Positions 31,601 through 34,600 of a stretch of 64,000 nucleotides of DNA are shown piece after piece. Where the stretch lies: contig NC_134034.1 in assembly GCF_964204645.1 (NCBI RefSeq), positions 11,482,962-11,546,961 of the forward strand. Reading direction: 5' to 3'. Within the stretch, counting starts at the first letter, position 1, and each line of letters begins with the position of its first letter. The stretch comes from Tubulanus polymorphus. Its lineage: Eukaryota > Animalia > Nemertea. A program made the translations under genes and the position numbers. The notes below the pieces were generated by a model that saw nothing but the letters and a program-made list of their open reading frames with translations, had not been told where the DNA came from and ran no database searches.

Positions 31601-34600
31601 TTCACGCCGCGCTACGACTTATAGAAACAACGGCGGATAAATAACTACGTCTACCACCACCAGGGGTCACCACCACCCGCACCTGACCAGTACCGATCAA
31701 TAACAATGCACGTACGTAAAGCTTGAGGTGTTAGTTAGAATGTGTAGTATTGATATCGTCTACCCCTGCCGCTACCTCGCCCCAAATTCTTCAAATCTTT
31801 GATTCGATTTGATTTTCTCATTATGGTAATTTTCAAAGTTGTATTAGTATATTACGAATCTGGACATTTGGGAAGGACAACAAGCTTGTGTGATAGCTTT
31901 TCTCACAGAGATAGCCTTTCTTACAGACAGTGTGATGTGGTTTCGTCGCCCTGAACAAAATCAAAACAGAAAACATTAGAGAAATAGTAGCAATAATAGA
32001 CGCATCATATAGTCGATAAAGCTTAAACAATCTTTTGTTTGAATCTTCAAGCGAAGCCCAGAATTGAAAGATCCATCGTTTTTTTTTTTCATATTCATTT
32101 GCATGTATATATTATGGTGGCTGATAAGGGCCATAGCGTAAAATTCCTGGTATGTAAATGAGGGCGCCAGAACGCCAGAACGCCAAAACGAAAAAAAACG
32201 TCCAATTTTCTCTGAAAGTTCGTTTTGGCGCGCCAAAACAAAGAAAATTCCGTTTTGGCGCCCCCGCCAAAACGAACTTTCATTTTGGCGCCCCCGCCAA
32301 AACGAACTTTCGTTTTGGCGCCCCCGCCAAAACAACGAAAAACGTCGAAATTTCTCTAAAAGTTCGTTTTGGCGCGCCAAAACAAAGAAAATTCCGTTTT
32401 GGCGCCCCCGCCAAAACGAACTTTCATTTTGGCGCCCCCGCCAAAACGAACTTTCGTTTTGGCGCCCCCGCCAAAACAACGAAAAACGTCGAAATTTCTC
32501 TAAAAGTTCGTTTTGGCGCGCCAAAACGGAAAATATTCCGTTTTGGCGCCCCCGCCAAAACGAACTTTCATTTTGGCGCCCCCGCCAAAACGAACTTTCG
32601 TTTTGGCGCCCCCGCCAAAACAACGAAAAACGTCGAAATTTCTCTAAAAGTTCGTTTTGGCGCGCCAAAACAAAGAAAATTCCGTTTTGGCGCCCCCGCC
32701 AAAACGAACTTTCATTTTGGCGCCCCCGCCAAAACGAACTTTCGTTTTGGCGCCCCCGCCAAAACAACGAAAAACGTCGAAATTTCTCTAAAAGTTCGTT
32801 TTGGCGCGCCAAAACGGAAAATATTCCGTTTTGGCGCCCCCGCCAAAACGAACTTTCATTTTGGCGCCCCCGCCAAAACGAACTTTCGTTTTGGCGCCCC
32901 CGCCAAAACAACGAAAAACGTCGAAATTTCTCTAAAAGTTCGTTTTGGCGCGCCAAAACAAAGAAAATTCCGTTTTGGCGCCCCCGCCAAAACGAACTTT
33001 CATTTTGGCGCCCCCGCCAAAACGAACTTTCGTTTTGGCGCCCCCGCCAAAACAACGAAAAACGTCGAAATTTCTCTAAAAGTTCGTTTTGGCGCGCCAA
33101 AACAAAGAAAATTCCGTTTTGGCGCCCCCGCCAAAACGAACTTTCATTTTGGCGCCCCCGCCAAAACGAACTTTCGTTTTGGCGCCCCCGCCAAAACAAC
33201 GAAAAACGTCGAAATTTCTCTAAAAGTTCGTTTTGGCGCGCCAAAACGGAGAATATTCCGTTTTGGCGCCCCCGCCAAAACGAACTTTCATTTTGGCGCC
33301 CCCGCCAAAACGAACTTTCGTTTTGGCGCCCCCGCCAAAACAACGAAAAACGTCGAAATTTCTCTAAAAGTTCGTTTTGGCGCGCCAAAACAAAGAAAAT
33401 TCCGTTTTGGCGCCCCCGCCAAAACGAACTTTCATTTTGGCGCCCCCGCCAAAACAAACTTTCGTTTTGGCGCCCCCGCCAAAACAACGAAAAGCGTCGA
33501 AATTTCTCTAAAAGTTCGTTTTGGCGCGCCAAAACGGAGAATATTCCGTTTTGGCGCCCCCGCCAAAACGAACTTTCATTTTGGCGCCCCCGCCAAAATG
33601 AACTTTCGTTTTGGCGCCCCCCGCCAAACAGCGAAAAACGTCGAACTTTCTTTGAAAATCCGATTCGTCTCCCTTCGATTTTGTTACGAGTCGGATCTAG
33701 GTATACTAGATAATACATATCGTTGTCGATGGTGGTGGTGTATACATTAACGGACTAACGAACAGGTATGTAGCCTATTCAGGGTTAAATGCAGGGGTTG
33801 CTTTGGGTCCTCGAGAACCCCTCCCACTTGGAAAACTACTTTTCAAAGTAGACATGTTAGGCCTACATCTTAAATGTATGAGATGATCAAGTAGCGCCTA
33901 AAAACGCTTACAATTCATGAAAATGGGACTAAGTTTTTAAGATTTCTCGGGATGACCAGCAGAGCACCACCGTACCCCCTCGACCCCCACTCCTTAAAAA
34001 ATGCTGGATCAGCCCCTGGTATCATTTAAATCCTATACATTGCCTCGCATTGCTTAGCTCACATAGGCCTATTCATAAACTTTGTTCTTTAATATGCCAA
34101 TATATTTTAAAAATCGATTGATTTTCGGCCGCTGAAAACATATTAAAAAAACCGATGTCGTTCTCTGGTATGCGCAGGCAATATAACACGTACTGGTAGT
34201 ATTCTAAGTTTTCGACGTGAGCCGTTTCTCTCGTACTGCCTAATCATTGTAAGCGACGATTATTTTGCTCGGTCTGCATTAGTGAAAACTAATGAATTAT
34301 AATCATTCAATGGCGTTAATTCGTAAATGTCTTCTTTACAGATGGACAACATACTCCTAGAATTGGGATTAGGCCAATACATTGCAAAGTTTCTCGAAAA
34401 TAAGGTACCGTGTTTCAATACTTTATGTATACACAGACTTGCCCCGATTGGTAATGCTATAGGGCCATAACTTCTGAAAATGTATCATATTTTAATTTCT
34501 CATCCAGATAGGTGTTAGTGACGTCACGACCATGACAGATAGTGATTTTGAAGCAGCAGGAGTTACAGCTATCGGGGATAGAGTCCGGCTAAGGAATAGG

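Follow-up and report, generated by a model that had tools for sequence, protein, structure and literature searches.

Introduction

Transposons of the IS3EU/GingerRoot superfamily, described as largely unexplored (PMC11934779), have been reported in sea anemone, coral, fish, beetle and acorn worm (2019, PMC6839031; Kojima and Bao 2023, PMC10045372); their hallmarks are TA..TA termini and 6-bp target duplications (PMC10045372 section 3.3; PMC6839031). This article concerns a DNA transposon of this superfamily in the nemertean Tubulanus polymorphus, which occupies 9,741 bp (32113-41853) of a stretch of 64,000 nucleotides, hereafter the window (assembly GCF_964204645.1, contig NC_134034.1, positions 11,482,962 to 11,546,961, forward strand). 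Both ends of the element are long arrays of palindromes that resemble binding sites for the cell-cycle factor E2F. An earlier note on this DNA had proposed that the arrays double as E2F-driven promoters or act as an E2F/Rb sink, with transposase binding as the fallback. As argued below, the palindromes are probably transposase binding sites.

The element resembles described IS3EU/GingerRoot transposons in its TA..TA termini, its 6-bp duplications, its terminal inverted repeats and its rva_4 DDE transposase. It differs from described GingerRoot elements, whose inverted repeats are 100-150 bp long, in having repeats of 0.9-1.5 kb made of 144-bp tandem units, and in carrying a conserved second gene, SAM-HECT. 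The papers searched contain no description of a HECT gene paired with an IS3EU/GingerRoot transposase, nor of such long arrays.

Parallels to this organization exist in other superfamilies. In MuDR, the autonomous element of maize Mutator, both genes are read inward, each from a terminal repeat that contains a binding site for the transposase MURA as well as the promoter (PMC3440606). The nemertean element likewise has two convergent genes running inward from its terminal repeats; MuDR, however, belongs to the MULE superfamily, makes 9-bp duplications and has repeats of about 215 bp that are not tandem arrays, and promoter activity of the terminal repeat has been shown for MuDR, whereas here it is putative. 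A DNA-transposon family that spreads copies of the E2F consensus is known from Brassicaceae, where MITEs (miniature transposable elements with inverted repeats) carry, according to the account of Henaff et al. 2014 given in PMC5950925, an interior TTSSCGSSAA motif that is bound by E2F in vivo. The array-only miniatures of the nemertean element are comparable, but the motif here makes up the subterminal repeats themselves, the genome is that of an animal and the sites are putative. Many short subterminal motifs in both ends bind transposase in Ac/Ds, En/Spm, Hermes and Foldback elements, and the long variable terminal repeats of Foldback elements are built of tandem units. These elements differ from the present one in superfamily and motif, and in the latter the palindromes are strict, spaced by 30 bp and organized into a 144-bp higher-order unit.

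Results

A new family within IS3EU/GingerRoot

The element is flanked by 6-bp target duplications and its ends are organized as follows.

32107-32112, no strand: left target-site duplication ATATAT, the same hexamer standing at 41854-41859
32113-32180, plus strand: left unique terminus, which opens with TATGGTGGCTGATAAGGGCC
32181-33651, plus strand: left subterminal array, 10.2 units of 144 bp, with 39 exact palindromes and 1 decayed
40922-41785, minus strand: right subterminal array, 6.0 units of 144 bp, with 22 exact palindromes and about 2 decayed
41786-41853, minus strand: right unique terminus, ending ...GGCCCTTATCAGCCACCATA
41854-41859, no strand: right target-site duplication ATATAT

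The arms 32107-33044 and 40922-41859 are inverted copies of each other, 100% complementary over 938 nt. When the left end was used as a query against the animal's own genome (268 Mb, 77 contigs), at least 231 matches were found, among them at least 40 termini at 97-100% identity. All genomic copies start at TATGGTGGCTGATAAGG, and more than 25 termini start with TATGG and end with CCATA. Eight copies are bordered by perfect hexamer duplications that differ from one site to the next: ATATAT here and AATATG, TAAATC, TGAACC, GTATTT, GCCTAT, GTATTG and CAAAAC elsewhere.

With its 5'-TA...TA-3' ends, its 6-bp duplication and an integrase-like DDE core, the element has the characters by which IS3EU/GingerRoot is recognized. 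It is placed in this superfamily on the strength of these characters together, the core being of the rva_4 type, and not on that of a reference-protein phylogeny, and it constitutes a new family there. Ginger1 and Ginger2, which give 4-5 bp duplications, were rejected as alternatives since the duplication here is 6 bp; so was Polinton, despite its 6-bp duplications, since polymerase and capsid genes are absent, the element is only 9.7 kb long and its termini begin with TA. Scanning the element for Rfam families and tRNAs gave no match.

The subterminal arrays are built of E2F-like palindromes

Tandem Repeats Finder describes the left array (32181-33651) as 10.2 copies of a 144-bp unit with 96% matches, and the right array (40922-41785) as 6.0 copies of 144 bp with 97% matches, inverted relative to the left. 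Each unit contains one TTTTGGCGCGCCAAAA (motif A) and three TTTTGGCGCCCCCGCCAAAA (motif B), and the palindromes within it are spaced 30-30-30-54 bp. Exact palindromes number 39 on the left (10 A and 29 B) and, in reverse complement, 22 on the right (5 A and 17 B); all 61 lie inside the arrays, with none elsewhere in the window. The stretch singled out in the earlier note, 32221-33660, belongs to the left array. The note had seen the termini as arrays of E2F-like palindromes, about 40 on the left and about 24 on the right, and both the description and the counts agree with the present ones once decayed copies are included (39 plus 1, and 22 plus about 2). Its 30-bp subunit stands as regards the palindromes and their numbers and fails as a uniform period, the true unit being 144 bp long.

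Motifs A and B each consist of the half-site TTTTGGCG and its inverted copy, separated by 0 or 4 bp, and the spacers between palindromes are themselves nearly palindromic (CCAAAACGAACTTTCGTTTTGG). Three half-sites in direct orientation, CGCCAGAA, CGCCAGAA and CGCCAAAA, stand in the unique left terminus near 32163-32190, and two of these three do not fit TTTSSCGC. The half-site motif is therefore present in both ends, in inverted orientation, and also beside the cleavage terminus.

In vitro, the consensus for E2F is TTTSSCGC, which is described as both sufficient and necessary for binding under those conditions; in human cells the consensus occurs in just 12% of the E2F1 chromatin immunoprecipitation (ChIP) peaks and most genomic matches are unbound (PMC3069401). 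Sites were scored with this IUPAC (International Union of Pure and Applied Chemistry) consensus, taken from PMC3069401, and not with a position weight matrix. In the element there are 79 strict matches; every one falls within an array, the 7.27-kb interior has none and the rest of the window has 10. The motif identified in the earlier note as E2F-like is thus a genuine match to the consensus. Motif A contains two perfect TTTSSCGC sites and motif B one plus a TTTGGCGGG-type site, so that every palindrome has at least one. The motif A 16-mer has 524 exact copies in the genome, versus 0 for the reversed control, which together with three B per unit implies about 2,000 palindromes genome-wide. The host genome has E2F_TDP matches above cut-off at three places, namely C8:14.01 Mb, C3:21.99 Mb and, with two domains, C1:27.86 Mb. 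The resemblance to the E2F consensus is real, and judged from the motif it is plausible that E2F would bind naked array DNA.

Inside the arrays the ratio of observed to expected CpG is 2.0, against about 1.1 in the rest of the window, and the region shows no CpG depletion. Since the ratio is already about 1.1 throughout the window, CpG depletion is unusable as a proxy for methylation.

Subterminal motifs are specific to each family

Homologues of the HECT protein, 28-40% identical, were found in a fish, an acorn worm, two beetles, an octocoral and further eukaryotic contigs. Six such loci were compared with the nemertean element: Dendronephthya gigantea (L057), Saccoglossus kowalevskii (L058), Ceutorhynchus assimilis (L060) and three European Nucleotide Archive (ENA) contigs (L059, L061 and L062). 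A convergent rva_4 gene comes after the HECT gene in five of these loci; in the remaining one, that of Saccoglossus, no rva_4 gene was called. Because this pairing recurs in a cnidarian, a beetle and other eukaryotic contigs, the HECT gene looks like a conserved accessory gene, to judge from these comparisons, of one IS3EU/GingerRoot lineage. Where the ends of the relatives are readable they are TA..TA with 6-bp duplications (TAAATG in L057, CTTTTG in L061), and the first 20-25 bp or so of the nemertean element resemble their termini (TACGATGGCC..GAAGGC in L059 and L061, TACGAAGGCGTAGAAGGGCC in L060).

Where the nemertean element has its arrays, every one of the six relatives bears tandem subterminal repeats of about 20-22 bp. 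Several are palindromic, and their motifs are unrelated:

Dendronephthya gigantea (L057) and L062: repeat motif TAGTCGAG
L059 and L061: repeat motif CACAGTTCAGTTGTGATTTTT
Ceutorhynchus assimilis (L060): repeat motif CAAAATTTTG
Saccoglossus kowalevskii (L058): repeat motif CGTGGCCACG

The same holds closer to home. In the T. polymorphus genome, four other rva_4 families, compared over 3.5-kb loci (L021-L032), have repeats of 20-29 bp with other motifs again, one of them ending ...GGCCCGCCATA. The genome also contains families at 68-79% identity, located at C2:6.48 Mb, C8:4.64 Mb, C2:9.57 Mb, C3:15.41 Mb and C4:17.38 Mb. The number of TTTSSCGC sites in the relatives is 0-2 per element, which is chance level, versus 79 here, and no E2F-like motif was found in the termini of the six relatives or of the four rva_4 families from the same genome. 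The subterminal motif is thus family-specific among related transposons, and the E2F motif is not conserved in them. The octocoral locus has a further peculiarity: head-to-head arrays of a 90-bp repeat (35 and 14 copies) are nested inside the related element at L057 16497-21017.

Arrays have grown recently and miniature copies are mobile

Over the interior, five copies show 99.6-99.8% identity, and others 98.6%, about 97%, 94.7% and 91.8%. Array size follows identity, with one unit at 92%, two to three at 97-98.6% and four to ten at 99.7%. The 92% subfamily has a single 144-like unit, partly decayed, within an inverted repeat of about 270 bp, and it keeps the arrangement of three terminal half-sites. 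Since the number of units grows as copies get younger, the arrays are a recent expansion.

Comparison of 116 full units from all copies revealed about 11 variable positions, all of them in spacers and none among the 76 palindrome positions. The variable positions are clustered and perhaps reflect some 5 independent events, so that the invariance of the palindromes is only moderate evidence of constraint.

The genome also contains non-autonomous copies of 0.6-1.4 kb in which the termini and some 4+4 array units are joined to about 130 bp of unrelated DNA, and at five sites these are flanked by perfect 6-bp duplications. Array-only derivatives have therefore been mobile, and the termini and arrays suffice for mobilization.

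Two regions of the genome, C12:5540382-5632342 and C12:6502736-6548961, contain nine termini of a variant type (TACGGTGGCTGATAAGGGCC), all on one strand and spaced by 5-18 kb, and three transposase copies at 23-kb spacing. This series looks like a segmental tandem amplification that includes element copies.

Two convergent genes are expressed and spliced

The interior contains two convergent genes, SAM-HECT on the plus strand and the transposase on the minus strand:

33652-33765, plus strand: unique spacer past the left array, a putative promoter-proximal region and first non-coding exon with the candidate donor ACAG/GTATGT (33765/33766)
33934-34167, plus strand: 5'-untranslated exon of the SAM-HECT gene, an X4 contig starting exactly after ...CTAAG and ending exactly before GTATGC
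34342-34404, plus strand: coding exon with the start codon (MDNILLELGLGQYIAKFLENK) and the first half of the SAM domain (X4 junction 34404/34508, GT..AG; frame checked)
34508-34652, plus strand: coding exon with the second half of the SAM domain (X4 junctions 34404/34508 and 34652/35095; weak Pfam SAM_1 match, E 0.038)
35095-36944, plus strand: main coding exon of the HECT-domain protein, stop codon 36942-36944 (Pfam HECT, E 8e-9)
37780-38070 (approximate), no strand: nested high-copy repeat between the 3' ends of both genes, delimited by word depth
38550-39667, minus strand: 3' half of the transposase, exons at about 38550-38754, 38844-38996, 39079-39191, 39302-39429 and 39550-39667 (four CT..AC junctions in X4)
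39769-39954, minus strand: transposase exon with the first catalytic D (HLDGYDKL) and a stop codon at 39871-39873 (rva_4 positions 4-32, E 3e-5)
40214-40751, minus strand: N-terminal part of the transposase, resembling a helix-turn-helix and placed by homology, with three open segments (40751-40650, 40489-40376 and 40351-40214)

Expression was assessed by mapping reads over 33640-39639. Runs X2 and X3 are unspliced DNA, whereas run X4 is RNA, because introns are missing from its contigs, GT..AG ones for the plus strand and CT..AC ones for the minus strand. X4 thus shows both genes to be expressed and spliced. The reads of X5 (2015), the one doubtful candidate for an RNA run, contain none of the element. 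The inward orientation of both genes relative to the arrays, asserted in the earlier note, is confirmed. The donor proposed there at 33765 stands less firmly: no X4 contig covers any part of 33640-33839, but the contig that starts just after an AG, at 33934, implies an upstream intron ending at 33933, for which 33765 is the obvious candidate donor. The 5' end of the HECT gene therefore probably lies upstream of 33934, at 33652-33765. On the other side, the distance of about 170 bp between the right array and the first transposase exon holds for the first recognizable, putatively coding segment, which begins at 40751, 171 bp away.

Exons were searched one by one, not as joined spliced proteins, against Pfam and sequence databases. 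The SAM-HECT product would consist of a SAM domain (weak Pfam match), a middle part without domain assignment and a HECT domain, which matches residues 538-615 of the 629-amino-acid open reading frame with E 8e-9. In the transposase, rva_4 profile positions 4-32, 62-103, 104-141 and 142-173 are collinear on successive exons; the pieces score 13-26 bits each, singly at or below the 26-bit cut-off, and their simple sum is roughly 83 bits. The DDE motifs HLDGYD, RMDAGTEN and QRIERWW are visible, with the second D (RMDAGTEN) in exon 39302-39429 and the E (RIERWW) in exon 39079-39191. The N-terminal segments between 40751 and 40214 line up in order with the N-terminal part of the L059 transposase, which has no introns (tblastn and visual comparison). 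They resemble a helix-turn-helix, and within these open segments no pattern of an HHCC zinc finger, which IS3EU/GingerRoot transposases lack upstream of the core, is visible. Searched against Pfam, none of the N-terminal exons matched a DNA-binding family significantly, nor did any match E2F_TDP. The window copy has a stop codon at 39871-39873, and the same codon is open in five other near-identical copies; since the stop interrupts the exon with the first catalytic D prematurely, the window copy is probably non-autonomous. An intact copy lies at C1:4.406 Mb.

A degenerate copy (about 77-81%) of the terminal segment (element positions 30-117) lies at 40095-40179, inside a transposase intron and oriented like the right end, and is perhaps the remnant of an earlier terminus. 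The nested repeat at about 37780-38070 reaches a word depth of 9122 in DNA run X2 and 4927 in RNA run X4, has loose ends at 37880, 37957, 38033 and 38067, and gave no tRNA or Rfam match.

Other repeats in the window

Arrays and a small inverted-repeat element based on the motif CCACAGTT/AACTGTGG occur at 790-1199, 3827-4014, 8339-8508, 25315-25354, 45319-45705 and 59788-60084, and the motif is also found at 41880-41995, adjoining the transposon. These arrays recall the CACAGTT repeats in the ends of L059 and L061 and may be the ends of another transposon family. A tandem unit of about 50 bp (…GAGCCATTTTCAAAAACTAAGAGAGTAGTGACGTTTAGA…) forms arrays in both orientations at 4509-4902, 17767-18469 and 27630-27923.

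Discussion

Comparison with related elements speaks against E2F use as the main function of the arrays. Relatives have the same type of array with different motifs, so that the palindromes are most likely docking sites for the transposase. The reading I favour is thus that they are transposase binding sites serving end pairing, within a superfamily in which such arrays are the rule and each family has its own motif. The half-sites beside the cleavage end, the mobility of array-only derivatives and the variation that spares the palindromes also favour it. Multimers of the half-site TTTTGGCG would be bound, probably by the helix-turn-helix N-terminus of the DDE transposase, and the bound palindromes would help to pair the two ends and to assemble the transposition complex. 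The ancestral end would have had about one 144-bp unit, from which tandem duplication would have produced the two to ten units of the youngest copies; longer arrays may aid transposition. The match to the E2F consensus would then be a coincidence, or at most a secondary use. The fallback of the earlier note has therefore turned out to be the better-supported reading, given the unrelated motifs of the relatives. Since the arrays lie directly upstream of both 5' ends, the promoters would be expected within the arrays themselves or the adjacent 100-170 bp, and it is plausible, by analogy with MuDR, that the terminal repeats serve as promoters of both genes from putative start sites nearby.

Several points weigh against transposase docking as the whole explanation. 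Binding of the transposase to the half-site is deduced from sequence comparison, and part of the palindromes' invariance could stem from recent homogenization. Moreover, the 4-bp CCCC spacer of motif B is as invariant as the half-sites, which a model of half-sites alone would not predict. Finally, the host has E2F/DP-type proteins, so that E2F would probably bind naked array DNA to some extent, and the arrays may have a second function.

Such a function would be that of a cell-cycle promoter or enhancer, the palindromes being bound by a host E2F/DP or E2F7/8-like factor that couples the supply of transposase to S phase, possibly in addition to binding by the transposase itself. Among the observations that would speak against this proposal, the earlier note had named unrelated subterminal motifs in related elements, co-varying with the DNA-binding domain of the transposase. 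Unrelated motifs, the first half of this, are what the six relatives and the four rva_4 families of the same genome display: none has an E2F-like terminal motif. The older subfamily, moreover, has a single, partly decayed unit, and in human cells the consensus is present in only 12% of E2F1 ChIP peaks, most genomic matches being unbound (PMC3069401). What speaks for E2F is that every palindrome has at least one perfect TTTSSCGC, an in-vitro E2F site (PMC3069401), that E2F_TDP loci number at least three in the host, one of which has two domains, that the arrays lie within about 110-170 bp of the putative 5' ends of two expressed and spliced genes, and that, as summarized in PMC5950925, Brassica MITEs have amplified E2F sites bound in vivo (Henaff 2014). 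Its support, like that of the sink considered below, comes down to the motif match and the host E2F/DP genes, and I regard it as rather unlikely. A more elaborate version would have the transposase sites of this one IS3EU family converge on, or be co-opted as, high-affinity E2F/DP sites; E2F would then fire the transposase and HECT genes at G1/S, timing transposition to replication, and the roughly 2,000 palindromes would wire or buffer the E2F network of the host. This scenario, read from the motif and its genomic distribution, is unlikely.

The growth of the arrays suggests another explanation, namely that they are neutral, satellite-like expansions produced by replication slippage or unequal exchange, as in Foldback-type repeats, and that just the outer 70 bp or so, perhaps with one unit, matter. 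The number of units does vary from one to ten between copies and from 10.2 to 6.0 between the two ends of the window copy, and the old subfamily manages with one. Yet every mobile non-autonomous copy examined has retained arrays of several units at each end, variation avoids the palindromes, and tandem subterminal repeats are conserved in relatives across several phyla, all of which makes purely neutral expansion quite unlikely. That the palindromes (524 exact A copies, about 2,000 implied with B) form a sink titrating host E2F/Rb complexes is very improbable, being pure conjecture and at odds with copies that are young and variable in number, which disfavours a fixed host function.

Transposase docking thus being the preferred function of the palindromes, the element provides a well-resolved IS3EU/GingerRoot architecture in which kilobase-long termini made of palindromic arrays, a HECT accessory gene, active miniatures and measurable array growth are found in one family; such an example can serve annotation and the choice of a tractable element for biochemical work. 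If it is true that host E2F binds the arrays, this would be the first animal DNA transposon to couple its expression to S phase by way of E2F, and it would have spread thousands of consensus E2F sites, which would bear on the timing of transposition and on the rewiring of the cell cycle.

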